Part shown: piece by piece, positions 164 through 64,000 of the stretch | Layout: the number at the start of each line of letters is the position of its first letter | Position numbering within the stretch: the stretch's first letter is position 1 | From: Haliotis rubra | Lineage: Eukaryota | DNA: 64,000 bases | Reading direction: 5' to 3' | NCBI RefSeq assembly: GCF_003918875.1 | Contig: NW_025767088.1 | Span: 62,001 to 126,000, forward strand | Notes under the pieces: generated by a model | Told to the model about the DNA's origin: nothing | Seen by the model: the letters and a program-made list of their open reading frames with translations, nothing else | The model's database searches: none | Program-made: the position numbers and the translations under genes

Positions 164-2507
164 ATGTCAGAAGATGCAAGCGAGTACACACAGAAAGGTA
201 CGCCAGAGAACATAGCCAGAGCTTTCTGCGCCTCTGCTTATCGTGCTGGGCTCACCAAACAGGAAGTAGTGGATTTCTACTCTAATTGGGCCGTGGACGG
301 CAAATATGACCAGGTAGGCTCTATATAACTAGTAAGTATATATATGACACGAAATCGTTTTAATGTTGCTTCTCCGGTGTACTCAACTATTCTCCTTCAT
401 CGAATGGCCTTATATGTTTCAGAATTCGGGCTATGAGCGCTACAAAGGACCAGTCATTGCTGCCAACGCCTTGGCAGAATATTTCAATGAAAGCATACCC
501 AAGACGAAAGTATTAGATGTTGCTGCAGGGACAGGCCTTGTTGGCAAACAGGTACAGCAAAGTGAACCAAATTAATTCAACATATACACTCACTGAAACG
601 GAAAGGTCCTGTAATTACCACATAGTGTACAGAGGATGAATGGTATGCATTTTCTAAAATATTCCTGACAGAAGTTTTTCACAATAGGACCCGTGAAGAT
701 TCGGGCTAGAACTGATCTTCAGTAACCCATGCTTGTCGTAAAATGCGACTAACGGGATCGGGTGGTCAGGCTCGCTGACTTGGTTGACACACATCGTCGT
801 ATTCCAATTGCGTAGATCGATGGTCAGACTGTTGATCACTGGATTGTCTGGTCCAGACTCGATTACTTACAGACCGCTGCCATATAGCTGGAATATTGCT
901 GAGTGTGGCGTAAAACTAAACCCACTCCCTCACTCACTCTTGCTAATCAGCTGATCTGTGTATAAGAGCTGTTTGGTCAATCAGTTTGCCTTATTATACA
1001 CTAAACAGTTGGACAATTCTGTAGCTTCAGGACCGAGGATTTAAGCATCTGGATGCTCTAGAACCTGCTGCAGGGATGTTGGAACAAGCCAGGAAGAAGA
1101 ACATCTACACCAATCTCTACTGTGAGTTCCTGGACGGCAAGCGTCTCCCAATAGATGATGGTAGGTAACATCTGATCTCCACTTGATCCCATAGTAACAC
1201 GCATCCCAGTAAATAGTTATAGCACCTCCTATAAATGAAATGGTATTGTGTCTCTCCACTGTTACATTAAGACAATTTGTCAGTTCTACCAAGCTGTGCT
1301 TAACATAGGTTCTTTCGTATGTTACAGACTCGTACGACTGCTGTGTTATAAGCGGTGGAATGGGAGAAGGACACATTCCATGCCGTGGGTTGAACGAACT
1401 AATTCGATTGACTAAACCAGGTGATTCACCTTACAGAAAACATTTGAACAATACTCGCCTCAATTCAGATATAGCAATTAAACAACTTTCGAAATCGGTC
1501 CGAATGCCAAGACGGAGTATGAAAACACGTAGTTTTTTTAAGTATTGTGAAGTATAGAAAGGTGCACTATTGCAGTAAACCGTCATTCCAGTCATGGTTC
1601 ATAAAAAGCTCATATTCTGAACAATCTATATCAATAACGTTCTGTTAAATTTTTCCTGTCTCATTCTAGATGTAACCTTTTTACAAACTGCTGTCGAAAC
1701 CAGTCGTTTGGACAAAGTTAAGTGTAATGAATTGTGAATCGAAATGACATATTCAAAATACATAATTTACTGTGATAAAATGACGATATATATTCCTAGA
1801 TTTTCTATAGAGCTGTACACTATAAGCACATTAGTTACAAGCGTATATTCTAGAACAACATATAGAAGTTCTAAGGATCGCTTCTCTGTATTTATATCAC
1901 ATGAAACCAACTGTTGAAAACCAGTCACTGAAATTAGGCCTTTGGTTTTCTGGCCTCTGGCCTTATATCCAATAAAATGCTTGTGTGTCTGTCGTTAGTA
2001 TTTCATAAAGGGTTGTTTTTATTCATTGATGCTTCAACGTCTAGAGTGCCCTTAAGTGTGATATCTGTATGCACAGGCAGATAAAATTTATTAATATATA
2101 TTGTTTGGTAAACATTTTAATCCCTCTTTTAAGGGGGGTTCGTATGCATCGTGATGAAGGAATCATATCTCTCACAGTGAGAGACGTAAAACCCAACTCA
2201 CTCTCTTACTCGTCATTGCTCTAAAGTCATGACTGCATATAAGAATATGGTTTACATTTGTGTGTGAATCAAATTGCATGTCATCTTTTGTCCGTAGTAA
2301 ACATTTTAATCCCTCTTTTCAGGGGGTTTAGTATGCATCGTGATGAAGGAATCATATCTCTCACAGTGCAAGGAATACATGGAAGGACTGGAGCAGCTGA
2401 TGAAGGAACTGGAGGATGCTGGGAAATGGAAACGGCTGTCCCGTCACGTTGTGCCAAAATACTCTTATGACGACAATGGTGTTATCTTCAGATTTAGGAT
2501 ATGTTGA
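164..2507 (+). CDS. METTL27-like: METTL27/WBSCR27-like SAM-dependent methyltransferase, copy 1 (5 coding exons, ~230 aa, intact)
   Basis: Exons 164-313, 423-551, 1025-1160, 1328-1420 and 2323-2507 all have AG/GT borders and sum to 693 nt in frame to TGA. Motifs: YSNWA..YDQ, SAM motif I VLDVAAGTGLVG, LDALEPAAGML, YDCCVISGGMGEGHIP, ELIRLTKPGGLVCI. A splice acceptor 2 nt before the ATG implies an upstream 5' UTR exon. Confidence 0.9.
688..939 (+). mobile_element. SINE family A (pseudoknot head, no tRNA boxes seen, LINE-like 3' tail)
   Basis: Consensus-like sequence: gacccgtgaagat.cggg.tagaa.tgatcttc...gcttgtcgtaa.a.gcgactaac...gctggaatattgctgagtg.ggcgtaaaac...(actc)n. About ten further copies occur in the window. 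Confidence 0.85.
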
Positions 2508-4687: not shown

Positions 4688-4920
4688 GACCTTTGAAGAT
4701 CCGGGTCAGAATTTGTCTTCAGCAACCCATGCTTGTCGAAAGAGGTGATCGGGTTGTCAGACTCGCTTACTTGGTTGGCACATGTCATCGTACCCCAAAT
4801 GCGAAGATCGATGCTCATGCTGTTGATCACTGGATTGTCTGCTCCAAACTCGATTACTTACAGACCGCCGCCATATAGCTCTGCTACTGATGTGTTGCGT
4901 AACACAGCAAACAAACAAAC
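4688..4920 (+). mobile_element. SINE family A copy
   Basis: Same body as 688-939, with an (aaac)n tail. Confidence 0.8.
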
Positions 4921-17863: not shown

Positions 17864-18023
17864 GGGGCGATGGGGTAGCCTAGTGGTCAAAGCGTTGGCT
17901 CGTAACGCCGAAGACCCGGGTTCAACTCCCCACATGGGTACAATGTGTGAAGCCCATTTCTGGTGTCCCCCGCCGTGATGTTGCTGGAATATTGCTAAAA
18001 GCGGCGTAAAACCAAACTCAGTC
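17864..18023 (+). mobile_element. Short tRNA-derived SINE family B (~155 bp)
   Basis: A-box tagcctagtgg and B-box ggttcaactcc, then gaagcccatttctggtgtccc and the shared gctggaatattgct tail. Other copies lie at ~5140-5270, 6985-7127, 11052-11205, 20274-20432, 26831-26965, 31410-31555, 43290-43400, 48268-48352, 56315-56410, 57315-57460 and 58088-58167. Confidence 0.85.
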
Positions 18024-18780
18024 AGTATAAACCTAACCATGACATTTTCCAACACTAAGTTGCAGAGGACCACATATGAAACAGTTATGCACAAAGGCAT
18101 GATAATAGGTGGTAGAATATGCATTAGGAACATATGTTTGCATATTTACATGTATGCATATACTAAACATAATATATACTTGTATATGCTGGTTGTTACT
18201 TTCATACACCATGCAACTGGGGACTGTGAATGAAATAGCATCATTTGACTGAACTACATACTTTTCCATTAGAAAAGAGGGCAAGATAAGGTATGTGCTG
18301 TTTAGTTATATAGAAATTAACTGTGGGACTTTGAAAAACTGGTCATCAAGGAGCCAAAAACTCGTGAAACGGTCACATCAACCAAACTCACAAACTGGTA
18401 TGAAGAGATACTTTGTGTTATGGGTGGGGCAGAATACACTCACATTTTCGCGAACATCTTGACTCATTACTGTGTTGACAGTGATTCATAAATAATAGCT
18501 CATGAAATGGTCTAAATTGTACATCGATTCTGCTTTTATGATGTGGAAAGAGTTCATCACAGTTTTGCACCAGAACTGAAAGTGTTTGAGTGAAGGATTA
18601 TAATGTCTTTCAGATGGCCATTTGGACGATGTAGTATCAGTTAAGACGAAGGCGTGGATTTACGTGCCTGATAAACAGGGAAAACAAGCTAAATCCATAT
18701 CCCAAATCAGATTTTATGGATTGGTTAGGAGGCAAGTTAGCTGCGACTGTAGGAATATTGCAGGCTTTGTAATTTCAGAA

Positions 18781-20744
18781 ATGTCAGACGAGGGGGTAAC
18801 TACGAATTCACAGAATTATGTACAAGAGGACACAGCAAGGGCGTTTACAGCCGAGTGCCATCGTGTTGGGATCACCACAGAGGAAGTCGTTGATTTCTAT
18901 ACCAAATGGGCCATGAATGGCAAATACGACCAGGTAGGTTTTATTAAATTACTGGGTATATGGTATGACGTCTTGTTAATGGTATCTATTCGCTGTACTC
19001 AGATATTCACCTTCATCTTATGATTTCCATGTTTCAGGATTTGCGTTTTGAGCAGTATGAGGGACCAGTCATTGCAGCAAACGCAGTGGCAGAGTACTTC
19101 AGGGATGATATACCCCAGACTAAAGTATTAGATGTTGCCGCAGGAACAGGCCTTGTAGGCGAACAGGTACAGCTTCATGATCCAACTTCACATGTATGCT
19201 CGTAAATGCTAACATCTTGCACACATGGCGTACGAAAGATGGGTGAATGATGTGTAATTTTTTAAAAGATTATCACACTTATTGGTTGTTTATCAATGTA
19301 AATGTATATTGAATCATAACTTTGCTCTTTATTAAATCATAAACAGCTGAGTCATGTTTCAGCTTCAGGACCACGGATTTAAGCACCTGGATGCTCTAGA
19401 ACCAGCTTCAGGGATGTTGGAACAAGCCAGGAAGAAGAACATCTACACCAAAATCTATTGCGAGTTCCTGAACAGTAAACCCCTCCCAATAGATGACGGT
19501 AGGTAACTTTTGACCTTGATTTGATCATGTACTAGTGAGCATTCCACCACCTATGTTTAGCAAATACTGCTATATATAAAATAGAAAAATTTGTTTTCTT
19601 TCTGATGTCCATTTTCGAAAATCTGCATATGCCAACATTTGTGATGAACAGGCATTGCAATCATCTTTCAGGATCGTACGACTGCAGTGTATCATGTGGT
19701 GGTATGGGAGAAGGACACATTCCACTGCACGGGTTCTACGAACTAATTCGAGTGACCAAACCAGGTGAGTTGGATTTAGATCTACATCTTACAGAAGATC
19801 AGAATGGAGCAACAAAAACTAAATTGTGTATATATATAACTGAAAAAGGTCGAAATTGCAACAGTCCTGGTAGTCCCAAAATTATTCAGACAAATGTTTG
19901 GTTTATAAACATTTTAGGACACTTCTCTCAGTCTGAAGGTAACTAATTTCTGCTATCACAAGACATTCGAAAGTTCTTTTGTCTCAAATTTGCCGTCGAC
20001 ACTGATCTCGCCCATGTTCAAAATGAATAATTTACACTTTGGTGAGAGGACTATATATATTTCGAAAATAAATCTAACCAACAAAATGGAAGTTCTAAGG
20101 ACCTATTTTTATATACACTAAGTAAACAAACTGTTGAAAACCAGCCGTTCGAAATTAAGAAATTTTCTTTGCATGCATTTTCGGCCTGGGGTGTTTTTTT
20201 CAATTAATGTCTGTATGGTCTTCTGCCTGTCTCTACTCAGATTTATTGACTATTGTTTCTTTCATTGTTGGGCTGGGGCGGTGGGGTATCCGAGTGGTTA
20301 AAGTGTTCGCTCATGACGACAAAGGCCCGGGTTCGATTCCCCACATGGCTTGAAATTGCGAAGCACGTTTCAGGTGTCCCCTATTGTGATATTGTTTGAA
20401 TACTTAAAGAGACGTAAAACCCAACTCACTCTCTTACTCGTCATTGCCCTTAAGTCATGACTGCATATGGGAATATGGTTTACACGTGTGTGTGAATCAA
20501 ATTGCATTTCATCTTTTGTCCGTAGTAAACATTTTAATCCCTCTTTTCAGGGGGTTTAGTCTGCATCGTGATGAAGGAATCATATCTCTCACAGTGCAAG
20601 GAATACAAGGACGGACTGGAGCAGCTGATGAAGGAACTGGAGGATGCTGGGAAATGGGAAAGATTGTCACGTGATGTCGTGCCAAAATACGCATTTGGCG
20701 AAAATGGTGTTATGTTCAGATTCAGGATATGTAATAGAAACTAA
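18781..20744 (+). CDS. METTL27-like: METTL27-like methyltransferase, copy 3 (~234 aa, intact)
   Basis: Exons 18781-18933, 19038-19166, 19363-19498, 19672-19764 and 20551-20744 sum to 705 nt with canonical splice sites. Motifs VLDVAAGTGLVG and GGMGEGHIP are present. Confidence 0.9.
20274..20432 (+). mobile_element. tRNA-derived SINE family B copy
   Basis: A and B boxes plus tail, in intron 4 of copy 3. Confidence 0.8.
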
Positions 20745-34611: not shown

Positions 34612-34948
34612 TTGTTTGTATGTTTGTTTGTTGTTTAACGCAGCAATATTACAGCTATATACCGGCGGTCTGTATATAATTCAGTCGGGGACCAGACCAG
34701 ACAATCCAGTGATCAACAGCATGAACATCGATCTACGCAATTGGTATATGATGATAAATGTCAATCAGTTCAGCGAGCCTGGCCACCGGATCGTCTCTTA
34801 CGGGGTTCTGAAGATTAATTCTTACCCTGATTTTCACGGGTGTATCAGGAAATGGTCAGCGCGCCTGACCACCCGATCTCGTTAGTCGCCTCTGACGTCA
34901 TGCATGCTTTTTTCTGAAGATCTATTCTAACCCGGATCCTCACGGGTC
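34612..34948 (-). mobile_element. Two adjacent SINE family A copies
   Basis: Copies at ~34612-34842 and ~34855-34948; both heads end at cacggg on the plus strand. Confidence 0.75.
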
Positions 34949-41400: not shown

Positions 41401-44400
41401 ATAAAGAATTACTAACACAAAGTACCGAATGAATTCCCACAGTTCGGCCTTTCCATCGGGTAACATAGAAAATGTTACAAGCTTGTAAGCGGGGTACATT
41501 GGAAATAGTACAAAAGCGCTCAGCCAGTCCGAAAAACGACATTTATGTGTAACGTAAGATAATCGTGAATGGACAGTGCATTGATGATATCATTATTACT
41601 CTGACACGTATGTTGCTGCAAAGTTAGCATGTACTGAATCATCACTGTCTGGGTAAATATATTGTTTCTGTGTATTTTTCAGGACTTGTGTTCGGAACGT
41701 TACCAGGGACCAGTCATTGCTGCAAATGTTCTAACGGAGCATTTCAATGACAACATCACAGAGACGAAAATATTAGACGTTGCGGCTGGAACCGGCTCAG
41801 TAGGGAAAGAGGTAGACATTCATGCGCATGCCCTCCACCCAATACACGCGTGGAGGGGTACCGGTGCTAGTGCATGAGTTCCCCTATATTTTGTCATTAG
41901 TGTGTACCTGGGATATTGCTGAATGCTGCTTAAAACAACCAGTTTAAATATACAGGGAATGTGTTTCGTTTACTGAGTATATATATGTTCCCTCAGAAAT
42001 GTCTAACATATAAACAAAGTCAGAACTTTCACGATCATCACTTTAGTATTTTATGAGAAAGCATCATAATTATTATAAGCGTATTATCGTTGCGATTTTT
42101 ACAGCGCCAATTCGCAGAGAATCAATCACAATGGTTATGACGAAGCAATGATTGGGGAAATTACACACGGGTATATGTTCATACAGAATTAGTTGTTTCT
42201 AGCTTCAGGATCGAGGTTTCTCCAGAACAAGCTGCAGGGATGTTGGAACAATCCAGGAAGAAGAACATCTACACCAACTTCTACTGTAAATTCCTGGACG
42301 ACAACCGTCTCCCAATAGCAGGTCTCTCAAATATGTTTATCTCTTTTACAGCTTCAGGACCGAGGATTTAAGCATCTGGATGCTCTAGAACCAGCGGCAG
42401 GGATGTTGGAACAAGCCAGGAAGAAGAACATCTACACCAACTTCTACTGTGAGGTTCTGGACGGCAACCGCCTCCCAATAGATGATGGTGAGTAACATTC
42501 TGGGTTGGTTTGTAAATGTTCCATACGTTTTATCAATTCATCCGAAACAATACTCATAACTTGCCTGTTAAAGCGACATTCCTTTTAATAGGCTTGTTTC
42601 TCATAATAAAGAAGTTGATATCTGTAAAATTCTCTACTCTTGTGCATCGCTTCCACATGCCATTATAAGATTTCCTGAGGCTCTGTATTGAACATATATA
42701 TGTTTTCCATGGCAACAATATTATAGGTTTGTTTGTTTGTTTGTTGTTTAAAACCGCACTCAGCAGTATTCCAGCTATATGGCGGCGGTCTGTAAATAAT
42801 CGAGTCTGGGACAGCCAGTCCGCGGATCAAGAGCATGAACATCGATCTGCGCAATTGGGATACGATAACACGTGTCAACCAAGTCAGCGATTCTTATCAC
42901 CCGCTAGTCGCCTTTTACTACCAGCATGGGTTGCTGAAGACCAATTCTAACCTGTATCTTCACGGTTGCTTTGGGACTGGGAACCTGTTCGACCCCTGGT
43001 GATATGGAACAACATCGCAACAGGACGAGAACGTCATATTTTCATTGGGAAAAGAATTCCGTTTATTCACCCTCCTTGTTTTGTTATTTTAAAGAATATT
43101 CTTCATTTGCAGACACATACGACTGCTGTGTTATATCGGGGGGTATGGGTGAAGGGCAGATTCCATGCCACGGGCTATACGAGCTGATTAGAGTAACTAA
43201 ATCAGGTGAGTTGTATTGGAAGCAAATGATTCATCCACGTCACAGGTTACAAATAAGAGTCAAAACAGTAACTGTATGGTTTTGCACCACTTTTAGCAGA
43301 AATAGAAATAGGCTTCACACAATGTCCCCACGTGGGGAATCGAACTCGGGTCTTCGGCGTGACGAACGGGCGTTTTAACCACAAGGCTACCCAACCGCTC
43401 CTCAAGCAACACATGTACAATGAGCGGATCGAAGGGAGTACGTTTCCAACTGGAACTGGAACGTGTAATGCATTTTTCAAATAGATCTTTATCAGCTCCA
43501 TGTAAGCATGATCTCATTAATTGATTTTAGTTCTAACAGCTATTATATCAAACTTTTTTTTTTTCTTTTTTTATCATAACATATACATTTGATCATAATA
43601 TATATATGATAGAAGTAACACTATACTCTTTGAGAAGGCTTATAATGTGGATCAGTTATGCCAAGGCCATCCTTTAATCTTAACTCGATGTGTCAAAACA
43701 AACTGACATACACTCAAAACATATTGATACCGATATGGTCAGTGCATGGTCAGATCATTCATGGGACAGGGTCACTCTTGAGTGAAACTTAAGGGAAGTG
43801 ATTTAATCCTGCCACAATGATAAGTGGGGACTACGGGTTTGCTTTTTGGCTCCCATCCATCTATGCTTGTCGTAAGTGGCGTCAATATGAATTGATCTAG
43901 AAGCCAGACCCCCAAAATGGTAAACAAATGTGGTGCAGTTCGGGCGACCAAACGGGATGTGATTTTTCACACAATCAGGAATGATTTAGCTTTGATTGCC
44001 AGCCGGTTGTCATCAGTTACCGTGCCTGACTACCGTGCAGGGGCCCTTTTAAGGTGAAACATGTCATGTCAGTTGTGGCAATATTTTAACCGATAGCTGG
44101 ATGGTTTAAGTTAATAACTCTGCTTTGGATTGACCGAGTTTCATAAAAATAGTAGTTTTGGAATGCTCAGTTAATGATTTATAATTGTGGACAATAATAT
44201 TACGTATATGCTAATCGCAACAAAAAAATTAGTAAGGTTAAAGGTCAATTTTATTAGAAAGGCCATTTGATGGGAAAATATGAGTTGAACTTTACAAATT
44301 AAAGGTACTTTTTCCAAAATGATGTTTTTTTGTGATGCAGATATATCATTTGAGGATCATATATACCTTTGGTTGTCACTGTATGCATGAAAACACATTA

Positions 44401-47400: not shown

Positions 47401-50400
47401 AGACATACATCGTGTTGTCTATAATAGCATTGGGAATGATCTACAATCCATATCATGAGACTGACTATGCATTTATTCAATAACCTATCTCACAGGTTCA
47501 CAAATATGTTGGGCAAAAATTGATGTTCAGCAACCCATGTTGTCGTAAGAGGTAAATAATCTGATCAGGTGGTCGTTCTCACTTACTTGTTTGATGCATG
47601 CCATCGTATCCCCCTTACGAAGATCGATGCTCATAGTGTCATGACCATGTTATGTGTAACTCTTTGTGTATATCATTACATGTTACTAAAACTGAGACCT
47701 GCATATTTTTATTAACGTTACAGTAGAAGCAAGCTGTTTATATGAATATTATCTAGGAATATATTTGGGCTGTCTATAAAAAGTAGGCACTTATTGTTTT
47801 GTATTTAAAGCAATACGTTTCTGTCGTAATAGATTTTCATCAAATATTCCTGTGTGATAAAGTTGCAAATAAGGTACGACTAAATCGTTTCGGTGGACCT
47901 TCTTCAACTTCATATCTGTGCATGTAAACGTCAATGGAAGGTGTAGCTGCAAGCGGTTGAACCTGTTGTGTACTTCAGCGTGTGGATGTGGACTTGAAAC
48001 ATGTTCCCGTGATCTTGACATTGTTGATACTGACTAACATGTCAACTGGGAATACACAATGACTATTAAGAACAATAAATACAAATTGATATGAAGGAAA
48101 TGTTGCTTGAGTTATGATAAAATGACTGACTCACCATTCTTTGATGAGCAAAGAAAGAAATTTGGAATAATAGAATTATACATTTAAGACCTTTCTGTTA
48201 TGTTCTGTGATTTTAATGATAGTCTAACAGTATCTTCGACATATTTGGTATCGTTGATACTATGTGAGTGAGTATGTTTTACGTCGCGTTTAGCAATATT
48301 CCAGCAACATCACGGCGGGGGACACCATAAATGGGCTTCACACATTGCACCCTTGATACTATGTGAAGCATAGAACTGTTACAGTTGAACAGACATTATG
48401 TAACATTTGGCTGATCTAAATACAAAGTACCAACCTTTGTTATCTTGTAATGGTTTTTCATGGATACATATGTATGATCTTCAAATGATATAGCTGAATC
48501 AGAAAAAAACATCTGTTTGGAAAAATTACCTTTAATTTGTAAAGTTCAACTCATATTTTCTCATCAAATGGCCTTTATATTAAAATTTATCTTTGACCTT
48601 ACCATTTTTGTTGCTGCGATTAGCATATATGTAATATTATTGTCCACAACTTTAAATCGTGATCTAAGCATTCCAAAACTACTATTTTGATGAAAATCGG
48701 TCAATCCAAACCAGAGTTATTACACTGCACCACATTTTCACCATTTTGGGGCACCCGTGAAGAGCCACCTCCTCGTGGTAGGTGCTGGGTAACGCTAAGC
48801 GCTCTTCAACCCCCGTGTGGACCCGGGGGTATATTTGGTCCACCAACCCGTTTGCCGTGGGTTGCGCCCCTGTGTCGGTTGAGGACGGGAGCCTGGTGGT
48901 TGAGGGCACTGGTTCCAGGAATAGCGTTCCTTTGCCCAACACACCACTTCGCCCCTTACTTCACCTAGACGGGTGGTTGAATGGGCCCGGTTCAACCAAT
49001 CGGCTGGTCATGCCGAGCCCTGAGCACTAAACTTTTATTGCTCTGTTATTATTTGGCTTGGTTTTGTGATACATTTTGGAACTATTTTGTTATTTGTATG
49101 TATATAATATATGATACATGGATTTTCAAATTGAGAAAAATGCCTAGATGCTGGTGCCAGAAGGCAATGGCTCATGGGCCAAACTGGTAAGTCTTTCTAC
49201 TGGTGTATATCATCCCTATATCCCTAGTATCTGTCTGTTGGACATCCACAGGTAATAAGATACTGCCTCTCTTGGCACTCGGTGGCGGGTGGGTAGTAGG
49301 GATGACGAAACTTTATTTATACAATCATGGCGTTTCAAACCCCCCTTAAAAATCAAAGCGAACACTTGAAAACGATTCTGAGACTGATGATGTTTCTCTC
49401 AATTCGAAATCAGTGGAGTACTGGCCTAGATTCCTGGTGCTGGAAACACCCGATAAGACCCCAATTAAACTGAACCCTTTTGCTGTTGCTACGGGCATTC
49501 AAGGGATAGCGGGTGATGTAAAAAACAGGATCAATCCTTATTGAATGTGTTAAAAGACAACAAGCCACAAACTTGCTGTCAATTGATGAACTTGTTGGAG
49601 TCCCTGTTTATGTTTCTCCACACAGATCTCTCAATACCAACAGAGGGATCATAAGAGATCGGGACACACTCTTGGAAGATATGACAGAACTGGATATTGT
49701 TTATGAAATGAAAGAACAGGGAGTAACCTTTGTGAAAAGGTTTACCAGACGTCAAGGTACAGAAACAATTCCAACAAATACGTACCTTTTTTCATTTTCA
49801 TCCCCAGCAGCACCCAGATGAGTCAAAGCAGGTTATTGTAAAATTGATGTTGAAATCTATATCCCAAAGCCATTGAGATGTTTTAAATGTCACAATTTCG
49901 GCCATGGTGTAAATTCCTGCAAAAATAATATCATATGTGCGCACTGTAGTGAAACTACTCATGTCACTGAAGATTGTAAGAGTGATTTCAAAAGGTGTAA
50001 GAACTGAACTCTTTCTCAATAAATCGTGTCCAGTCTTGAAAAGAGAAATGGAAATCAACAAACTAAAATGCACAAGAAACATCACTTATATGGAAGCAAA
50101 GAAACTTGTGCCAAGTAATGAACAGACTGAGACGTATGCATCTGTGACCAAAACAATGTCAGACAGATTTGACATGGGTGAATTCCATTAACCCAAAGCC
50201 AATCGTACCATCTGATTCTGCTACCCAGACCGCTGTTCAAATTCCAGACACTGATTCTTCACCTTCTATGACAACTAAACCACCCTCTGTGGCAACTAAA
50301 CCACCTTCCGTGGCACATAAAACACCTTCACGGTCAGACTTAAATCATCAACCGTCACCAAAAGCACCGGTACCTTCTGGAAAAGGACAAACTGTTAAAA

Positions 50401-53400
50401 CAAGGTATAAAACAGATTCAACAATTTCGCGTTCAAGTCAACATGGTAGACAAGTTAAAGGATCAGATGATCCAATCAAACTGTATAACAAGTTTGGATC
50501 ACTTGAAGAGATGGATGTCTCTGAAAACATCCATTGTAGAACTGCTAGTTTGTCGCCTAAAAAATGGGCGAGGGAGATGTCCGGTTAATCCGCCAAAAAG
50601 ATGAATAGTTCTCAACCTTTGATTCAGTGGAATTGTAGATGATTTAAAGCAAATTTTAATGATTCACAATTATTTGTCCAAGACTATAAACCACCAGCAT
50701 TCTGTCTGCAGGAAACATATTTAAAGCAGACAGACCAAATTAACTTACGTCAGTACAACTCATATCATTATCAACTGTTAAAACATTTACCAGATACTTG
50801 TCTTGAAGTGCTATTATGTATCTTTGACAATATATGGACTACTGGGAATTTCCCTTCTTCATGGCGGAATGCTGTCGTCATTCCTATACCTAAACCTGGC
50901 CGGGATCATACAGATCTCTTACCAGCTGTTTATGTAAGACCATGGAGAGAATGGTCAATAACCGACTGATATGGTACTTGGAAACAAATAATCTTCTAAC
51001 AAATATTCAGTGTGGTTTTAGAAAAAATAGAAGAACCATAGATCATTTTGTTAGATTGGAAACGTTCGCAAAGGATGCTATCATCAAGAAACAACATGCT
51101 GTATCAATATTTTTCGATTTAGAATAAGCGTATAATACGACCTGGAAGTATGGAATTTTAAAAGAGCTTCATGAAATGGGATTAAGAGGCATTTTGTCTC
51201 AATTTATATCTCAGTTTTTAACAGATCGGCAGTTCCAGGTACGTGTGGGTTCCACCATGTCTGATATGTATGATCAAGACCAAGGTGTACCACAAGGTAG
51301 CATATATCTGTAACGTTATTCAGTATAAAAATAAACAGCTTATCTAAAGTTTTAAATGAATCCATTGATGGTTCATTATTTGTTGATGATTTTAATGTGT
51401 CATGTCGAGGTAAAAATGTACACACGATTGAGAGACAATTGCAATTATGCCTCAATAAAATTAATGATTGGTCAGAACGAAATGGTTTTAAGTTTTCAAA
51501 AACTAAAACTAATTGCATTCATTTCTGTCGGAACTATAAGCCGCACAGAGACCCAGAATTAACATTAAAATTGTAAAGGAAGCTAAATTTCTGGGAATAA
51601 TATTTGACCATAATCTTACTTTCTTACCACATATTAAATCTCTGAGAGCTAAATGTCTGAAGGCACTTGATTTATTAAAGGTTGTTTCAAACTCCAAGTG
51701 GGGAGGGGACCAGTCAACCCTCCTTCACTTATACAGATCACTCGTCCGTTCTAAACTCGTTATGGATCCATCATTTATGGTGGAGCCTGCAAGTGCAATC
51801 CTGAATTATAAGATTCTGTTCATCACCAAGGTCTCAGACTTTGTGTTGGATCTTTCCGAACTTCTCCTATTGACAGTCTTTCTGTAGAGGCTGATGAGCC
51901 ATCACTCAAACAACGCCGTATAAAATTATCGTTACAATATGTCACAAAACTATATTCTAGTGAGTCTAACCCTGCATATAACTGTGTTTTTAATCCTCTT
52001 TATGAGGATCTGTACAATAAAAAGTCTTCTCTTGTTCCGCCTCATGGGCTCAGAATTAAACCATTCATTTCTGCTGCCGGCATTGAGCTGCAAAACATAT
52101 CTCCTTAGCGTCTTCTTTCTTCTCCTCCTTGGCAACTGGTGAGGCCTGAAGTTGACCTAACTATGACAAATTTTAAGAAATCAGAAACGAATGAATTACA
52201 ATATAAACAGGAATATAATCAATTAAAAATTAAATATAATACATACAAGTCCTTATTTACAGATGGGTCCAACGATGGTGGCGCAGTAGCTTGTGCCACT
52301 GTTATTGGATCAAAAATAATATCTTCTAGATTACCTGGCAACAGCTCTATTTTCACAGCGGAAGCTAATGCCATACTCACAGTTCTTAAATATATTAATA
52401 AAAAACCTAAATATAAACAATACATAATATTTTCAGATTCTCTTTCTTGCCTTCAGGTGATTGAAAAAACATCCACTTTTAATTGAAATCGTTGAATTAT
52501 ATAATGATCTTGCTACTGGCCAATGCGACATCGTCTTTTGTTGGTTACCCAGCCATGTGGGAGAATCTCTGGTACCACAATGGCGGATTTCGCTGCTAAG
52601 GCAGCACTCAATAAATCTGTGACCCCACTTCTTATCCCATATTCTAATTATAAAGCCGTGATTAGATCATATATCCGAGATCTAATGCAAAAGAAGTAGG
52701 ACGACCAAGTAGGTATCAATAAATTACACGAAATTAAATCGGTTACACCTACTTGGGTTGTCAGTCCAGGTTTGAGGAGGTCATCATGCGACGATGTCGC
52801 ATTGGCCAGACAAGATATACACATGAATATTTATTGAAAGGTGAAGATCCTCCATTCTGTATCCCTTGTGATGAAAGAATCACGGTCAAGCGTGTCCTGC
52901 TTAACTGCATTGATTTTTCCATCACAAGGGATAAATATTTCAGTGTCAAAACACTGAAGGATCTTTTTTGTACTGTAAATTATCATTTAATACATGTTTT
53001 TTTTAAAGAAATATAATTCTTGCATAAATTAAATCTTGAATAATATGTTTGGTATATATTTAAATGGTATTTTAAGCATGGTAGTATGAATTAGCAACTG
53101 CGATTGTTAGTGGCTGTATCCTCAAAGGGGGTTAAAGTATTGTCCTCCTGAAAGGGTACGTACGTCCCAAATACTTTCAAAGTCAATTTCGCACAACCAT
53201 ACTTTTTAATCGTAGTATTTGTGTTATTTTAAAACTTTCGGCTAAATCTTCTTACATCACCAACATCTGAAGGGATGATGTAAATCCAGCTAGGGTCCAT
53301 GCAGGTAGCAAAAGTAATGTAAGTCCCCATGTTCCTTGTATGGTGATCTACCTTCAGTTGTTAGCGATCTATAGCCCGTGTTTTATATTGTATTGTCTTC

Positions 53401-54246
53401 TTTAATTAAAATCTTTTAGTTTAACATGCTAGTTTTATGTTCAGATATGTGATATTCTAGTATTTTTACTGTCCATCGTCGACAGGTTTTACTCTCCAAA
53501 ATGTTTTCATTTTTATTGTCTAAATTGTTTTCGTCACTATATGGCTGAGATATTGCCGATGTGACGTTAAATATTAATTCACTCACTCACCATTTTGGGG
53601 GTCTGGCTTCTAGACCAAATTCCTTGGTCAGCATCAATGACGATCCAGTAGATGTCACCACAAAGGAAAGTGGCCTGATACTTGGATTATTTGATCAAGA
53701 CAGATCACCGGTTTGAGAGTGACTTTGCGTATATGTGTAAATTTGATCTCGTCGCTGGTTGGCTGAAATAATGCCGACGCAAGGTGAGACTTTGACTCAG
53801 AGTCAGATATGTCCTAGTGCGGTTCTAGCCAACAAACACGCTTACGAACATATGTCAGAATGTTCGTTACTTACAGCGTATGGCTCTGTGCATGAACTGA
53901 GAATTTGATAAGGGATGGAGAATTATAACGACTAAACGTATACCGTTTTGGACGTCGGTTGGATCTTTCACAGGTGCAATCTGCTGAAGGTGAATATGAT
54001 GCAATTCCTGAAACGTGTAACACATGATGTCTGTAGTATATGGACAATTTGTACCTGACAGGGGGTCTTGTCTGCATCGTAATGAGGGAGGAATATCTGA
54101 CCAGTGTCAAGGAGTACCGCGATAGACTGGAACCGCTGATGAAGAAACTGGAGGAGGATGGGAAACTGAAACAACTGTCTCGTGATGTTGTGTCTCGGTA
54201 TTCCTTTGACAATAACGGAGTTGTCTATGAATTACTAGTTTGTTAA
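38405..54246 (+). CDS. METTL27-like: METTL27-like methyltransferase, copy 6 (~232 aa, intact ORF, TE-expanded introns)
   Basis: Exons 38405-38560, 41683-41811, 42352-42487, 43113-43205 and 54062-54246 sum to 699 nt. Intron 1 is ~3.1 kb and intron 4 is ~10.9 kb. A frameshifted extra exon 3 lies at ~42203-42321. Confidence 0.85.
38659..38696 (-). ncRNA. Minimal type I hammerhead ribozyme motif (U3-A8 variant) in the Penelope pLTR
   Basis: The minus strand reads GC-TTGATAA-CGGTGT-TAGAACCT-ACACTG-AAACGTC-GC, giving a UUGANAA/GAAA core, stem II, a palindromic ACGT stem III and a GUC cleavage triplet. Confidence 0.65.
39591..39628 (+). ncRNA. Minimal type I hammerhead ribozyme motif, second (inverted) copy
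   Basis: Sequence: GC-TTGATAA-TGGTGT-TAGAACCT-ACACCG-AAACGTC-GC. Confidence 0.65.
42728..42965 (-). mobile_element. SINE family A copy in intron 3 of copy 6
   Basis: A (gttt)n tail plus the family body. Confidence 0.8.
48750..48807 (+). ncRNA. HDV-like self-cleaving ribozyme fold at the LINE 5' terminus
   Basis: Sequence: GGCACCC-GT-GAAGAGCC-ACC-TCCTCGT-GGT-AGGTGCT-GG-GTAAC-GCTAA-GCGCTCTTC. P1 is GGCACC/GGTGCT with a G1.U wobble; P2 is GAAGAGC/GCTCTTC; P3 is ACC/GGT; L3 is UCCUCGU; P1.1 is CC/GG; J4/2 is GCUAA with the catalytic C. G1 coincides with the TSD-defined start of the element. Confidence 0.85.
48809..48843 (+). ncRNA. H-type pseudoknot in the LINE 5' UTR
   Basis: S1 is ACCCCCG/CGGGGGT (7 bp), L1 is T, S2 is GTGGACC/GGTCCAC (7 bp), and L3 is ATATTT. 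It is followed by the hairpin CAACCC/GGGTTG. Confidence 0.65.
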
Positions 54247-54647: not shown

Positions 54648-54898
54648 GACCCGTAAAGTTCCGTGTTAGAATTGATCTTCAGCAACCCATGCTTGTCGTA
54701 AGAGGCGAATACGGGATCGGGTGGTCAGGCTCGCTGACTTGCTTCACACATGTCATCAATCCAAATTGTGTAGATCGATATTCATGCTATTGATCACTGG
54801 ATTGTTTGGTGTAGACTCGATTATTTACAGACCGCCGCCATATAGCTGGAATATTGCTAAGTGCGGCTATAAGTAAAACTAAAGTCACTCACTCACTC
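54648..54898 (+). mobile_element. SINE family A copy
   Basis: Full length, with an (actc)n tail. Confidence 0.85.
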
Positions 54899-57119: not shown

Positions 57120-60100
57120 ATGGCCTGGATGTGTTATTCTAGGACATTAAGGAAGAATGTAAATGTGGCATGGCTAGTTCTTCTGGTTACGATACAACTG
57201 ATGTTTGGTAAGTGTTCAGATTTCCACTTTGTCATTCCTGTCTTGTTGTAGATACCCATCTATCATTGTAGTTTGTCGTCAATGGATGCAAAACGGAGAA
57301 TGATTCTCCTTTCAAGAGTGAGTGAATATGGTTTCACACCGCTTTTAGCAATATCAGAGAGGGGGACACCAGAAATGTTCTTCATACATTGTACCAATAT
57401 AAGGGAATCGAATCTAGGTCGTCGTCGTGACCACTGAACGCCTTAACCACTAGGCTATCCCGCAGACACTCCTATCCATAATAACTACAGCTAATATATT
57501 AAATGTTTATAGTTGGTGTGACAATTAAACAGCAAATGTGAGATAAGATGAATTAGTGAATATGATAAGTACAAAATGTGTTTTTCAAATGCCGATGACG
57601 TAGGTTGAACACCCGGATGTACCTATCCTGAGCAGGGGTGGTCACTCGTGGTCGTCCACTTCTTAGGCGATCTCGCGTCGAATTGAATGCTGTATAACGG
57701 GCCCACAGACGAGATATTGTGCTTTGGTGGACGTTATAATGACGTGCAACGTCGTTCATTCCTCATCAATATTTGTGATACAATGGAGTAAATGTATCGG
57801 GCTTTTATAGTCATTGTCTCTACTGATGAATTCCACTCATTTCACGTGCATTGTGATCAACATGTGCGTTTTCATGCATTTTCTTCACAATTGCTAACAA
57901 CGGTAACATGAAGTTGTTTTGGTTGTGTTGCGCGACATAACCATTAAAAATCACATACATCACATCATTCAAACATAAACATAGTCTTAATCATAGATTG
58001 CCGATATGAAAATGCAATAGAAAATCTCAATCCCCTGTGCGTTTCTTTTTTTGAAGACTGTATATAACTGAAGCTGTCATTTTTTAAGTGTGAAGCCCAT
58101 TTCTGGTGTCCCCCGCCGTGATATTGCTGGAATATTGCTAAAATCGGCATAAAACTTAACTCACTCAATGGTTATAATTATGTTTGTCTAGAGTTGCATG
58201 TGTTCCTAAACTACTTCTTTCATCTATCTTCTATCCTTAGCTAACACCGTCACATCTACTTCTGCCGGCGCCACTACAACTTCAAATGGAGCTGACATCA
58301 CCACGAGTTCCACAGTGGTTGATCCATTAACAACAGTCACGGACACGGCTGCTGACGTCACTACTGTTTCATTTCCAACAACCACAAGTTATCCAATCAC
58401 ATCCACTACCACATCAACTACCACATCTACTACCACAGTTGGTGCCAATACATCTACTACCACAGCTGACGCCATCACATCTACTACCGCAGTTGGTGCC
58501 AATACATCTACTACCACAGTTGACTCCATCACATCTACTACCACAGCTGACGCCATCACACCTACTACCGCAGCTGACGCTATAACTACCACCACAGCTG
58601 ACGTCATCACATCTACCGCCACAGCTGGCACCATTACATCTACTACCAAACCTGGCACCATCACTTCTACTACTACAGCTGACGCTACAACTACTACCAC
58701 ACCTGGCACCATCACTTCTACTAATACAGCTGACGCTACAACTACTACCACACCTGACGCTACAACTACTACCACAGCTGACGGTACAACTACTACCACA
58801 GCCGACGCTACAACTACTACCACCCCTGACACCATCACTTCTACTACTACAGCAGACGCTACAACTACTACCACAGTTGACTCCATCACATCTACTACCA
58901 CAGCTGACCCCATCACATTTACTATCGCAGCTGACGCTACAACTACTACCACAGCTGACGTCATCACATCTACCGCCACAGCTAGCACCAAAACATGACT
59001 CCATCACATCTTTCTACTACCACAACTGACGCCAACTATACACACCTGGACCATCACTTCGCAGCTGCCGACGCTACAACTACTACCACAGCTGACGTCT
59101 CACAACTACCGCCACAGCTAGCACCAAAACATCTACTACCACACCCGACACCATCATTTCTACTACTACAGCTGACGCTACAACTACTACCACACCTGAC
59201 GCCATCACTTCTACTACAGCCTGACGCTACAACTACTACTACAACTGACGCTACAACTACTACCACACCTGACACCATCACTTTTCCTACTACAGCTGAC
59301 GCATACACTTCTACTACCACACCTGACACCATCACTTCTACAACTACAGTGACGCTACAACTACTACCACACCTGACACCATCACTTCTACTACTACAGC
59401 TGACGCTACAACTACTACCACACCTGGCACCATCACTTCTACTACTACAGCCGACGCTACAACTACTACCACACCTGGCACCATCACTTCTACAACTACA
59501 GCCGACGCTACAACTACTACCACACCTGGCACCATCACTTCTACTACTACAGCCGACGCTACAACTACTACCACACCTGGCACCATTACTTACTACTACC
59601 ACTGACGCCGACTACTACCAACACCATACTACCACACCGACGCTACAACTACTACCATCACTTCTACTACTATAGCTGACGCTACAACTACTACCACAGC
59701 CGACGCTACAACTACTACCACACCTGGCACCATCACTTCTACTACTATAGCTGACGCTAAAACTACTACTACAGCTGACGCTAAAACTACTACCACTCCT
59801 GGCACCATCACTTCTACTACTACAGCTGACGCTACAACTACTACCACAGCTGACGCCTGGCAACATCACTTCCACTACCAGGCTGACCATCAATTCTACT
59901 ACTACAGCTGACGCTACAACTACTACCACAGCTGACGCTACAACTACTACCACAGCTGACGCTACAACTACTACCACACCCGACATCATCACTTCTACTA
60001 CTACAGCTGACGCTACAACTACTACCACAGCTGACGCTACAACTACTACCACACCTGACATCACCACTTCTACTACTACAGCTGACGCTACAACTACTAC

Positions 60101-63100
60101 CACACCTGACACCATCACTTCTACTACTACAGCTGACGCTACAACTACTACCACAGCCGTCCCTACAACTATTACCACACCTGACACCATCACTTCTACT
60201 ATTACAGCTGACGCTACAACTACTACAACAGCTGACGCTACAACTACTACCACAGCCGACGCTACAACTACTACCACACCTGACACCACCACTTCTACTA
60301 CTACAGCTGACGCTACAACTACTACCACAGCTGACGCTACAACTACTACCACACCTGGTACCATCACTTCTACTACTACAGCCGACGCTACAACTACTAC
60401 CACACCTGACACCATCACTTCTACTACCACAGCTGACGCTACAACTACTACCAAACCTGACACCATCACTTCTACTACTACAGCCGACGCTACAACTACT
60501 ACCACAGCTGACGCTACAACTACTACCACACCTGACATCACCACTTCTACTACTACAGCCGACGCTACAACTACTACCACACCTGGTACCATCACTTCTA
60601 CTACTACAGCTGACGCTACAACTACTACCACACCTGACACCATCACTTCTACTACTACAGCTGACGCTACAACTACTACCACACCTGACGCCATCACATC
60701 TACTAACACAGGTGATGCCATCACATCTAATGCCACAGCTGACGCCAACACATCTACTACCACAGCTGATGCTACAACTACTACCACACCTGACACCATC
60801 ACTTCTACCACTACAACTGACGCTACAACTACTACCACAGCCGACGCTACAACTTCTACCACACCTGATACCATCTCTTCTACCACTACAACTGACGCTA
60901 CAACTACTACCGCACCTGACGCCATTACATCTACCGCCACAGCTGACGCCATCACATCTACTAACTCAGGTGACGCCATGAAATCTACCGCAACAGCTGA
61001 CGCCATCACTTCTACTACCACAGCCTACGCTACAACTACTACTACACCTGCCACCATCACATCTACTACTACAGCTGACGCCAGCACAGCTGATGCCATC
61101 ACATCTACTACCACCGTTGATTCTATCATATTAACAACTACAGCTGAAGTGGCAACTACTACCACAGCTGACGTTATAACTACTACCACAGCTGACGTCA
61201 TCACATCTACTACCACAGCTGACGTCATCACATCTAATACTACAGCTAATGCTATCACATCTACTGCAAAAGCTCACGCTACAACATCTACTACCATAAC
61301 TCCGGCCTCCACATCTACAACCTCACCTGATACCATCACGACTCCTATCACAGCTGATGCCATCACATCCGCTACAACTACTACCACACCTGACACCATC
61401 ACTTCTACTTCTACAGCCGACGCTACAACTACTACCACACCTGACACCATCACTTCTACTACTACAGCTGACGCTAAAACTACTACCACACCTGACGCCA
61501 TCACATCTACTAACACAGGTGACGCCATCACATCTAATGCCACAGCTGACGCCAACACATCTACTACCACAGCTGATGCTACAACTACTACCACACCTGA
61601 CACCATCACTTCTACCACTACAACTGACGCTACAACTACTACCACACCTGGCACCATCACTTCTACTACTACAGCTGACGCTACAACTACTACCACACCT
61701 GGCACCATCACGTCTACAACTACAGCCGACGCTACAACTACTACCACACCTGGCACCATTACTTCTACTACCACAGCCGACGCTACAACTACTACCACAC
61801 CTTGCACCATCACTTCTACTACTATAGCTGACGCTACAACTACTACCACAGCCGACGCTACAACTACTACCACACCTGGCACCATCACTTCTACTACTAT
61901 AGCTGACGCTACAACTACTACTACAGCTGACGCTAAAACTACTACCACTCCTGGCACCATCACTTCTACTACTACAGCTGACGCTACAACTACTACCACA
62001 GCTGACGCTACAACTACTACCACTCCTGGCACCATCACTTCTACTACCACAGTTGACGCTACAACTACTACCACAGCTGACGCTACAACTACTACCACAG
62101 CTGACGCTACAACTACTACCACACCCTACATCATCACTTCTACTACTACAGCTGACGCTACAACTACTACCACAGCTGACGCTACAACTACTACCACACC
62201 TGACATCACCACTTCTACTACTACAGCTGACGCTACAACTACTACCACACCTGACACCATCACTTCTACTACTACAGCTGACGCTACAACTACTACCACA
62301 GCCGTCCCTACAACTATTACCACACCTGACACCATCACTTCTACTACTACAGCTGACGCTACAACTACTACTACAGCTGACGCTAAAACTACTACCACAC
62401 CTGACGCTACAACTACTACCACACCTGACCCTACAACTACTACCACACCTGACGCCATCACTTCTTCTACTACAGCTGACGGTACAACTACTACCACACC
62501 TGGCACCATCACTTTTACTTCTACAGCTGACGCTACAACTACTACCACACCTGACACCATCACTTCTACTACTACAGCTGACGCTACAACTACTACTACA
62601 CCTGACACCATCACTTCTACAACTACAGCTGACGCTACAACTACTACCACAGCCGTCGCTACAACTACAACCACACCTGGCACCATCACTTCTACTACTA
62701 CAGCTGACGCTACAACTACTACCACAGCTGACGCTTCAACTACTACCACACCTGGCACCATCACATCTACCACCACAGCTGACGCCATCACATCTACCAA
62801 CACAGGTGACGCCATCACATCCACCGCAACAGCTGACGCCATCACATCTACTACCAAAGCCTACGCTACAACTATTAACACACCTGCCACCATCACATCT
62901 ACTAATACAGCCGACGCCAGCACAGCTGATGCCATCACATCTACTACCACCGTTGATTCTATCATATTAACAACTACAGCTGAAGCGGCAACTACTACCA
63001 CAGCTGACGTTACAACTACTACCACAGCTGACGTCATCACATCTAATACTACAGCTAATGCTATCACATCTACTGCAAAAGCTCACGCTACAACATCTAC

Positions 63101-64000
63101 TACCATAACTCCGGCCTCCACATCTACAACCACACCTGATACCATCACGACTCCTATCACAGCTGACGTCAGCACATCTGCTACCACAGCTGACACGGCA
63201 ACTACTACCACAGCTGACGCCATCACAACCACTACAACAGCTGACGTCATCACATCTACTACCACAGCTGACACGGCAACTACTACCACAGCTGACGCCA
63301 TCACATCTGCTACCACCGTTGACTCTATCACATCTACTACCACAGCTGACACGGCAACTACTAACAGAGCTGACGCCATCACGACTAATACCACAGCTGA
63401 CGTCATCACATCTACTACCACAGCTGACACAACAACTACAGCTAACTCCACGACTTCTCCTACTGCTGACACCACAACTACAGTTAACACCACGAATACT
63501 CCTCCAGCTGAAACGACACCTACAGCTAATGCCACGACGTATCGTACAGCTGACACCAGTACTACAGCTAACACCATACCTACAGCTGACACCAGTACTA
63601 CAACTAACGCCACGACTCCTACAGCTCACACAAGTACTACAGGTAACGCCATGACTTATTCAACTGCTGACACCACAACAACAGCTAACGCCATGACTTC
63701 TGCTACAGCTGACACTACAACTACAGCTAACGCCACGACGTCTCCAACTGCTGACACAACAACAACAGCTAACGCCATGACTTCTGCTACAGCTGACACT
63801 ACAACTACAGCTAACGTCACGACGTCTCCTACAGCTGACACCACAACAACAGCTAACGCCATGACTTCTGCTACAGCTGACACTCCAACTACAGGTAACG
63901 CCACGACGTCTCCAACTGCTGACACCACAACTACAGCTAACTGTACGACGACAGCTACAGCTGAAACCAGTACTACAAATAATGCCACGACGTCTCCTAC
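57120..64000 (+). CDS. Secreted Thr-rich mucin-like protein (5' part; continues beyond the window)
   Basis: Exon 57120-57207 encodes MAWMCYSRTLRKNVNVAWLVLLVTIQLMF (signal-peptide-like) and ends in phase 1 at G|GTAAG. A phase-compatible acceptor (ctatccttag) opens a huge exon at 58241 of TTTADATTTTTPDTITS repeats. Frame breaks are confined to ~58985-59890; the frame appears open from ~59890 to the window end. Confidence 0.75.
57585..57960 (-). mobile_element. Tc1 transposase N-terminal HTH relic in mucin intron 1
   Basis: DVARHYNVHQSTISRLWARY...DRLRSGRPRVTTPAQDRYIR contains the paired-like HTH and the GRPR motif. Confidence 0.8.
58390..64000 (+). repeat. Coding tandem repeat of the mucin PTS domain (24- and 48-bp units, kb-scale higher-order duplications)
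   Basis: Units are gctgacgctacaactactaccaca and cctgacaccatcacttctactactaca. The distinctive block gttgattctatcatattaacaactacagctgaa occurs near 61115 and near 62953. Confidence 0.95.

Follow-up and report, generated by a model that had tools for sequence, protein, structure and literature searches.

The window considered here is a 64,000-nucleotide stretch of the Haliotis rubra genome (contig NW_025767088.1, positions 62,001 to 126,000 of the forward strand). Its subject is a short pseudoknotted RNA module, beginning at position 48809, that lies near the 5' end of a long interspersed nuclear element (LINE) and that also opens, in a diverged form, the copies of a short interspersed nuclear element (SINE) family, SINE A. 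The LINE insertion and its parts are, by position in the window:

48740..48749, plus strand: 5' target-site duplication ACCATTTTGG of the LINE insertion, with the identical 10 bases at 53589-53598
48750..48808, plus strand: predicted compact hepatitis delta virus (HDV)-like ribozyme without P4, at the exact 5' end of the LINE
48809..48815, plus strand: pseudoknot stem 1, 5' strand ACCCCCG, partner of 48824-48830
48816..48816, plus strand: loop 1, a single U, which is U in nearly all homologues
48817..48823, plus strand: pseudoknot stem 2, 5' strand GTGGACC, partner of 48837-48843, the covarying helix
48824..48830, plus strand: pseudoknot stem 1, 3' strand CGGGGGT, immediately next to stem 2 (loop 2, L2 = 0)
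48831..48836, plus strand: loop 3, ATATTT, drifted from the family consensus (U)UAGAAU(A/U)
48837..48843, plus strand: pseudoknot stem 2, 3' strand GGTCCAC, pairing with 48817-48823
48844..48864, plus strand: LINE-only hairpin SL3, CAACCC / GTTTGCCGT / GGGTTG, directly 3' of the pseudoknot
48975..48997, plus strand: covarying hairpin of the LINE 5' untranslated region (UTR), GGTTGAA-TGGGCCCGG-TTCAACC, with 7 different stem sequences and conserved flanks
49300..53013, plus strand: degenerate LINE coding region, frameshifted and with internal deletions, recognised by its reading frames and by Pfam RVT_1 and RNase_H
53535..53588, plus strand: 3' end of the LINE, closing in a (CACT)n tail; homologous to the tail of SINE A
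53589..53598, plus strand: 3' target-site duplication ACCATTTTGG, matching 48740-48749

The 10-bp duplication, together with an uninterrupted paralogue of the target at 43870-43950 (reverse strand), delimits the LINE to 48750-53588 and makes G1 of the ribozyme its first base. The coding parts comprise ORF1 (with RRM and CCHC domains), an endonuclease stub, reverse transcriptase (RT) and RNase H, related LINEs having Exo_endo_phos 3' of ORF1; in abalones the element is a LINE of the Nimb/I type that has RNase H. Towards the 3' end, positions 52700-53590 align contiguously with a copy from Haliotis rufescens (L124:642-1539). Around the 5' UTR hairpin (window 48964-49010), the loop UGGGCCCGG and the flanks are conserved while the stems vary among gastropod and bivalve LINE copies, with counterparts at L125:2071-2132, L127:1597-1658, L131:218-279 and L114:7119-7180. 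The stem of SL3, which reads CAACCC/GUUUGCCGU/GGGUUG as RNA in the window, covaries as well (CAACC/GGTTG, CGGCC/GGCTG in L127, CCATA/TATGG in L131), and the whole 5' UTR, about 260 nt in all, looks like one large structured RNA when its copies are compared.

The module itself reads, at 48809-48843 of the plus strand, ACCCCCG-U-GUGGACC-CGGGGGU-AUAUUU-GGUCCAC, that is, in the strand order of an H-type pseudoknot, with two stems of 7 bp each, all Watson-Crick, a loop 1 of one U, no loop 2 and a loop 3 of 6 nt. Such a geometry is weak evidence when taken alone, because a generic pseudoknot scan in which G-U pairs are allowed yields about 10 chance matches per window, and the case therefore rests on the comparison with homologues elsewhere. 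When pseudoknots are disallowed, minimum-free-energy folding settles on one of the two stems at weak z-scores and is uninformative on the pseudoknot. Intact relatives have a further hairpin, SL2, between the pseudoknot and SL3, where the window copy has about 40 nt deleted.

Metagenomic contigs were scanned for a pattern in which stem 1 and loop 3 are set and stem 2 is free. It matched 35 stretches, some 14 of them homologues in which the unspecified 3' strand pairs with the 5' strand: stem 2 pairing has a median of 7/7 in the homologues and reaches at most 6/7 in the chance matches (p = 1.5e-4). A covariance model then found 33 instances of the module, and it separates the two populations, homologues scoring 30-86 bits and chance pattern matches 24 bits at most. 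In the 32 distinct homologues, 86.8% of stem 2 is paired and double changes affect 5 of its 6 pairs, AU, GC, UA, GU and CG all occurring in a single column pair; the pairing collapses once the partners are shifted by 1-3 columns, and RNAalifold predicts the helix independently. The idea, put forward in a sequence-only reading of this DNA, that one selected RNA module is common to an autonomous LINE and a non-autonomous SINE is borne out across families, the covariation score of stem 2 being 0.344 against 0.159 in shuffles (0 of 500 reach the observed value). In stem 2, G·U occurs 28 times and A·C 12 times, an excess that points to the sense RNA. Stem 1 varies far less. Its core CCCG/CGGG is kept in 25-27 of 32 homologues and its fifth pair is A-U (12) or C-G (5) and unpaired in 14 sequences; in a tetra-like virus, discussed below, two core pairs are swapped (CGCCC/GGGCG). 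A rigid parse anchored on AGAAU gives 4-5 of 5 pairs for stem 1 and 6-7 of 7 for stem 2, and nearly all copies have loops compatible with coaxial stacking (L1 = 1, L2 = 0, L3 = 6-9 nt).

Could shared ancestry and neutral drift, with compensations arising by chance and no function, produce the same picture? The SINE copies in the window are old and randomly decayed, with mismatches and A·C pairs, and the generic geometry is, as said, common by chance. However, more than 15 different stem 2 sequences stay paired across LINEs, SINEs and viruses, and the chance matches remain below the bit scores of the homologues, so that drift can be given hardly any credence. On the comparative evidence, the pseudoknot is real: a conserved structured RNA module under sense-strand selection. 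Its consensus has a stem 1 of 4-7 bp around the CCCG/CGGG core, a loop 1 of one U, a stem 2 of 7 bp that is free in sequence, no loop 2, a loop 3 containing AGAAU and then SL2, about 75 nt in all.

SL2 is a two-tier hairpin 3' of the pseudoknot; its upper stem reads (G/A)UCGU...GCGA(C/U), its pentaloop reads ARRAG, and its fold is alike in 9 lineages whose lower stems differ (e.g., GAUCGU/ACGAUC, z = -5.2). The possibility that the G run of stem 1 pairs instead with the C run of SL2 was rejected, as the C run covaries with its own partner (L012, L127). Known RNA families do not account for the module: Rfam at gathering threshold on the window, and Rfam 15 on 8 intact modules (E <= 1) and on the window region (E <= 10), returned no family for it, s2m, exonuclease-resistant RNAs (xrRNAs), twister, hatchet and pistol being covered by these negatives, and a database entry that would explain the SINE head as a known RNA was thus not found in Rfam. 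In a scan of bacterial and archaeal genomes there was one real homologue only among the 80 of 86 matching stretches listed. That homologue is a LINE 5' UTR of mollusc type (L114, 6905-7180); its scaffold, which bears the label Solemya velum gill symbiont, probably contains DNA of the host. Within the window, a weak module-like match of 16.8 bits lies at 43818-43904 (plus strand), with stem 1 and loop 3 diverged; it abuts the repeat that the LINE entered elsewhere and may be the head of another, older family.

SINE A begins with a pseudoknot of the same geometry. Its copies in the window are:

688..925, plus strand: SINE A (LP-SINE type) copy, head at 688-720, 80 bits in the covariance model
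4688..4900, plus strand: SINE A copy, 49 bits
26039..26260, plus strand: SINE A copy, 86 bits
26479..26567, minus strand: SINE A head fragment, 84 bits
30300..30496, minus strand: SINE A copy with a decayed head, from the covariance model
34638..34948, minus strand: SINE A with two successive heads (34948 and 34843) and body, from consensus alignment and model
42754..42968, minus strand: SINE A copy, from the covariance model
54648..54885, plus strand: SINE A copy, 70 bits

Heads thus lie at 688, 4688, 26039 and 54648 on the plus strand and at 26567, 34948, 34843, 42968 and 30496 on the minus strand, with a fragment at 47496, and a 26-nt head pattern has 7 matches in the window against 0 expected. 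The consensus of 8 copies reads GACCCG-U-GAAGAUC-CGGGUU-AGAAUU-GAUCUUC-AGTAACCC-ATGCTTGTCGT. Compared with the LINE, both strands of stem 2 are changed at positions 2, 3 and 6 (T-A>A-T, G-C>A-T, C-G>T-A from LINE to SINE A) with all pairs kept. Both sequences, and the three compensatory changes between them, read as the sequence-only reading had them, and to its claim of a shared module can be added, besides the covariation and the G·U excess, a shared 3' tail. One covariance model recognises the SINE heads (47-86 bits) and the LINE 5' UTRs of H. rufescens and Haliotis asinina (76-86 bits), and pairwise alignment of the SINE head with the LINE 5' UTR gives p < 0.001. The SINE A tails are (CACT)n or (AAAC)n with ACTAAA just before, and local alignment of the LINE 3' end with them scores 40-46 against a shuffle maximum of 29-33. 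Head and tail being both homologous, SINE A carries both ends of this LINE family. Its target-site duplications are not clear by eye, with a possible AATTGCA at copy 4688.

LP-SINEs were described by Matetovici et al. 2016 in Haliotis, Ostrea, Saccostrea, Littorina and scallops (PMC4758252). Their head, about 70 bp long, has homologues at the 5' ends of three LINEs listed in Repbase, Nimb-17_LMi, I-3_DR and RTE-9_CPB, and according to the describing paper they are the only SINEs that take their head from a LINE instead of a small RNA gene (PMC4758252). The head was proposed there to be a promoter and the partner LINE was called unidentified, RNA structure, covariation and ribozyme being unmentioned (PMC4758252); a literature search returned no later paper using the term LP-SINE, and motif strings gave only chance primer matches. 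SINE A comes from Haliotis, has no tRNA, 5S or 7SL head (ARAGORN, Rfam), carries a Nimb-type LINE 5' head of about 70 bp and ends in 3' tandem repeats preceded by ACTAAA, in a tail common with tRNA-headed SINEs. Its head is almost certainly the published LP-SINE block, matched by description, the published consensus being figure-only, and the abalone LINE that shares both ends with it is, from these homologies, the likely autonomous partner of the Haliotis LP-SINE. A head of the tRNA or RNA polymerase III type was tried for SINE A and rejected: although GGTTAGAAT resembles a B box or T loop, an A box and a matching 3' strand for the stem are both missing, and the window contains no tRNA according to ARAGORN. 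SINE A starts only about 14 nt upstream of this B box-like GGTTAGAAT. Separately, elements that look tRNA-headed (GGGGTAGCCTAGTGGTCAAAGCG..., GGTTCGATTCCC) occur at about 17860-18050 (plus strand), 20269-20433 (plus strand) and 11020-11240 of the window; they end in the tail of SINE A, GCTGGAATATTGCTAAAAGCGGCGTAAAAC, which agrees with the published sharing of tails between LP-SINEs and tRNA-SINEs.

The relation of the module to the ribozyme was examined in LINE relatives gathered by a representative search with an ORF1 piece, followed by contig look-ups, in two abalone genomes: copies L124 and L125 from H. rufescens (assembly: PMC9709998) and L127-L129 from H. asinina (assembly: PMC11393055). 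Searched by words against proteins, the ORF1 piece gave a single fragment, and in 3 ORF1-based look-ups the contigs were too short to reach the 5' UTR. In H. rufescens, 3 LINE copies begin at the same ribozyme as in the window, with the module immediately next (0 nt) and then SL2 and SL3. The H. asinina LINE opens with a different HDV-like ribozyme, also predicted; a spacer of about 140 nt separates it from the module, and young copies that are 99.9% identical retain ribozyme and spacer upstream of the module. A ribozyme upstream of the module, as the sequence-only reading had predicted, is well placed: LINE 5' ends coincide with HDV-like folds in 3 lineages, and the duplication of the window copy flanks G1. 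All helices of the nested double pseudoknot can be drawn at 48750-48808 (P1 GGCACC/GGTGCT with G1·U, P2 GAAGAGC/GCTCTTC, P3 CAC/GTG, a C-rich L3 CTCCTC and J4/2 GCTAAG), and P1 covaries (CACCC/GGTG in the window, CACTC/GAGTG in H. rufescens). Rfam RF02682 matches the window ribozyme at 23.5 bits (E 0.027), L125:1822-1878 at 27 bits and L127:1195-1261 at 34.3 bits (E 0.0024), all below the gathering score of 44 and each at the 5' boundary of the repeat. The same reading had also tied the module to the ribozyme, and this part did not hold. The spacing of 0 nt in the window and H. rufescens and of about 140 nt in H. asinina makes the two separable, other LINEs and the SINEs have the module without an adjacent ribozyme, the RNA viruses and the iridovirus described below carry it too, and in LINE copies L018 and L019, whose flanks are unlike each other, the module is the first sequence.

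These starts bear on the published proposal for the LP-SINE head, namely an internal promoter acting at the DNA level, in which the first ~70 bp recruit the polymerase, transcription starts at base 1 and the RNA fold is secondary. In its favour, the module opens SINE A and the copies L018 and L019 with their different flanks, just as it heads Nimb-17_LMi, I-3_DR and RTE-9_CPB (PMC4758252); moreover, SINEs need some transcription route, and in trypanosomatid LINEs one segment, Pr77, already serves as both promoter and ribozyme. Nevertheless, since abalone LINE copies begin at the ribozyme, the retrotransposed RNA started upstream of the module, by 59 or about 205 nt, so that transcription began upstream too. 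The module does not set the RNA start in abalone LINEs, and a pure promoter role is argued against by its position 0 or ~140 nt downstream of the ribozymes. A promoter would need neither the covarying pairs nor the one-strand G·U bias, and RNA viruses, which have no DNA stage, keep the module in their 3' UTRs. Taken together, we consider the promoter proposal unlikely.

Is the module, then, a relative of the ribozyme, either a stripped HDV P1/P2 fold without P3/L3 or a new motif cutting at its own 5' edge? In topology it equals HDV P1/P2, the stem 1 of SINE A has a G1·U at its base, and toti- and tombus-like viruses are reported to carry small ribozymes, singly or in tandem, in their UTRs (PMC13725137). 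The SINE A head also aligns to the ribozymes of the window and of H. rufescens, leaving a single gap of some 20 nt across P3/L3 (p <= 0.001), and from this alignment ribozyme and module may be paralogues in one lineage. Against such a relative stand the lack of P3/L3, of P1.1 and of the J4/2 C, and the lack of any Rfam ribozyme match at E = 1-10; stem 2 directly adjoins stem 1, and most copies lack a C in loop 3. In addition, the H. asinina ribozyme is dissimilar to the module, with no similarity to the SINE A head by alignment, and the near-identical H. asinina copies keep the upstream ribozyme and spacer, so that the module did not cut there. That the module is a ribozyme relative of either kind is, on this balance, quite improbable. 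A ribozyme-like reading with stem 2 as P1 was likewise rejected, as it leaves no room for P3. It may be noted that the P1/J/P2 portion of the window ribozyme (CACCCGTGAAGAGC...GCTCTTC) is nearer to the SINE A head (GACCCGTGAAGATC...GATCTTC, e.g., 688-728) than the LINE's own module is.

Beyond retrotransposons, IMG/VR was scanned with a pattern fixing SL2 only, and the covariance model was then applied. The following copies were found:

L138: module in a toti-like contig of 6.9 kb, 23 nt after the stop codon of its RNA-dependent RNA polymerase (RdRp), 69 bits
L142: module in a tombus-like contig, after the RdRp open reading frame (ORF) and at the contig end, 57 bits
L135 and L141 (two independent samples): module in a tetra-like virus, 11 nt after a tetravirus-type capsid ORF
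L034:5979-6158 (= L147): tandem module pair at the 3' end, after the last ORF, in a contig with an S-domain coat protein
L137:1076-1159: module in Invertebrate iridescent virus 6 (IIV-6), in the AT-rich intergenic region 206R-209R, 60 bits

The viral copies score 57-72 bits, lie 11-100 nt 3' of RdRp or capsid stop codons and contribute 3 further fully paired stem 2 variants. The RNA viruses that carry them are unrelated and are probably viruses of invertebrates. The tandem modules are 106 nt apart and have different stem 2 sequences (GTGATGG and GTGGTGG). The identity of L137 as IIV-6, a double-stranded DNA virus of insects, was established by exact protein matches; its single module precedes the start codon of 209R by about 135 nt, on the same strand. 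A looser viral scan (AGAAT...TCGTARRAGGCGA) matched at least 117 stretches, and 0 of the 76 newly fetched ones pass the model. From this distribution, the module moves among replicators with unrelated polymerases and is horizontally mobile. The toti-like 3' UTR (L138:6790-6891) also shares CCUUACUUCAC and CACCUAGA with the LINE 5' UTR, beyond the module, and the strings common to the two outside it have been listed apart as CCTTACTTCAC and CACCTAGA; judged by these strings, the exchange between toti-like virus and LINE may be wider than the 75-nt module.

What might such a module do? As elements with unrelated polymerases carry it and selection acts on the sense RNA, we infer an action directed at the host: most likely, the module works through a host or intrinsic RNA property rather than through LINE proteins. 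A binding site for ORF1p or ORF2p, or an RT stop, seems less likely than such a host-directed RNA function, because the module also occurs away from the ribozyme in LINEs and SINEs, as well as in RNA-virus 3' UTRs and in an iridovirus. A protein platform in the wider sense would bind either these LINE proteins (for packaging or at the 5' junction, in an R2-like manner) or host translation factors, like a viral 3' cap-independent translation element. In its favour, the two ends of the LINE are retained in the SINE, neither loop 3 nor the SL2 loop varies and both are rich in purines, ORF1 has CCHC knuckles, the rest of the LINE 5' UTR is likewise covarying structure, and a cap is lacking on ribozyme-cut LINE RNA as on many RNAs of toti- and tombus-like viruses. 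A LINE-protein site, however, leaves unexplained the copies in viruses with unrelated replicases and in a DNA virus, and a translation element would bring a non-coding SINE no benefit and fails to account for elements starting at the exact module edge. We regard the platform as possible, if somewhat doubtful.

The reading that we prefer, tentatively, is that of an xrRNA-like block that stalls exonucleases and defines RNA 5' ends. The folded 5' block would stall 5'-to-3' exonucleases, yet a polymerase coming from the 3' side would pass; it would protect uncapped RNA, be it ribozyme-cut LINE RNA, SINE RNA or viral 3' fragments, and would fix the RNA 5' end at its own edge, which would be why SINEs and some LINEs begin exactly there. 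The placement of the module is in line with it, as it opens viral 3' UTRs, once in tandem. The xrRNAs of flaviviruses and plant viruses are pseudoknotted too, stand at the start of 3' UTRs and are sometimes in tandem; their 5' edge is where RNA 5' ends fall, and a polymerase from the 3' side must pass them. Several points weigh against this reading or against the module on which it builds. Exonuclease resistance is argued here from position, and transcription initiation could equally explain the fixed 5' ends of the SINEs. The module has no sequence or Rfam similarity to xrRNAs and would be a plain H-type pseudoknot, without the ring topology of the solved ones. The core of stem 1 is almost invariant, its support being mostly conservation and geometry with one doubly compensated variant, and in some single copies (IIV-6, the tombus-like virus) stem 1 is down to 3-4 pairs. 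The window LINE copy is degenerate and has neither SL2 nor the conserved AGAAU loop, its loop 3 having drifted, and the viral contigs come from metagenomes or metatranscriptomes.

A wider proposal, which we hold to be speculative and rather doubtful, is that the module is a new class of RNA, stalling exonucleases and defining 5' ends, that moves among RNA viruses, an iridovirus and retrotransposons, together with the birth of an HDV-like ribozyme, in the abalone LINE lineage, by insertion of about 20 nt into a duplicated scaffold. If true, promoter-less SINEs and uncapped LINE RNAs could be carved from any host transcript. With its covarying fold, its place behind a ribozyme in abalone LINEs and its copies in viruses, the LP-SINE head passes from a “putative promoter” to an RNA-level question that simple assays can answer, and the ribozyme-module resemblance gives a hint at the interconversion of an HDV-like ribozyme and a non-catalytic pseudoknot. 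Apart from these elements, the last part of the window (58000-64000) shows a strong strand asymmetry (GC skew of about -0.5, 47-49% GC) and long overlapping ORFs on both strands, Thr/Ser-rich, which look like a repetitive, mucin-like coding array.

Several known systems resemble parts of this arrangement. In Pr77/L1TcRz of trypanosomatids (L1Tc, NARTc, ingi, RIME, SIDER), Pr77 itself is both HDV-like ribozyme and promoter, whereas in abalones ribozyme and module are separate and the SINE takes the non-catalytic module only; the two were set apart by description. The 5' RNA of R2 also has an HDV-like ribozyme followed by structured RNA, there a pseudoknotted region that binds protein, and non-autonomous derivatives, the R2 SIDEs, retain LINE ends, but SIDEs keep the ribozyme and LP-SINEs do not, and the R2 structures are specific to the R2 protein and are not found in viruses. 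With the HDV-like fold itself, the module shares the strand order (S1a-S2a-S1b-S2b corresponding to P1-P2-P1'-P2') and, in SINE A, the G1·U at the base of stem 1, and the abalone ribozyme resembles a module copy with an insert of about 20 nt; unlike that fold, the module has no P3/L3, P1.1, P4 or catalytic C. A different kind of likeness is offered by s2m, a mobile stem-loop in the 3' UTRs of astro-, corona-, picorna- and caliciviruses that has been reported in insect genomes too. Both are short, strongly conserved structured RNAs that move among unrelated viruses and host genomes and use 3' UTR sites, so that the module would be the second case, after s2m, of a structured RNA common to viruses and animal genomes; it differs in sequence and fold (no Rfam s2m match) and is also a working retrotransposon head. 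The closest precedent remains the LP-SINE. The sequence-only reading had taken the ribozyme, the pseudoknot and the SINE for an undescribed system; the SINE head was published in 2016 as an LP-SINE sequence block, Haliotis included, whereas the fold with its covariation, the start of the LINEs at HDV-like ribozymes, the partner LINE with head and tail both in common with SINE A, and the copies in viruses appear to be new, and it is the fold, the partner and the viral copies that are added here to the published description.

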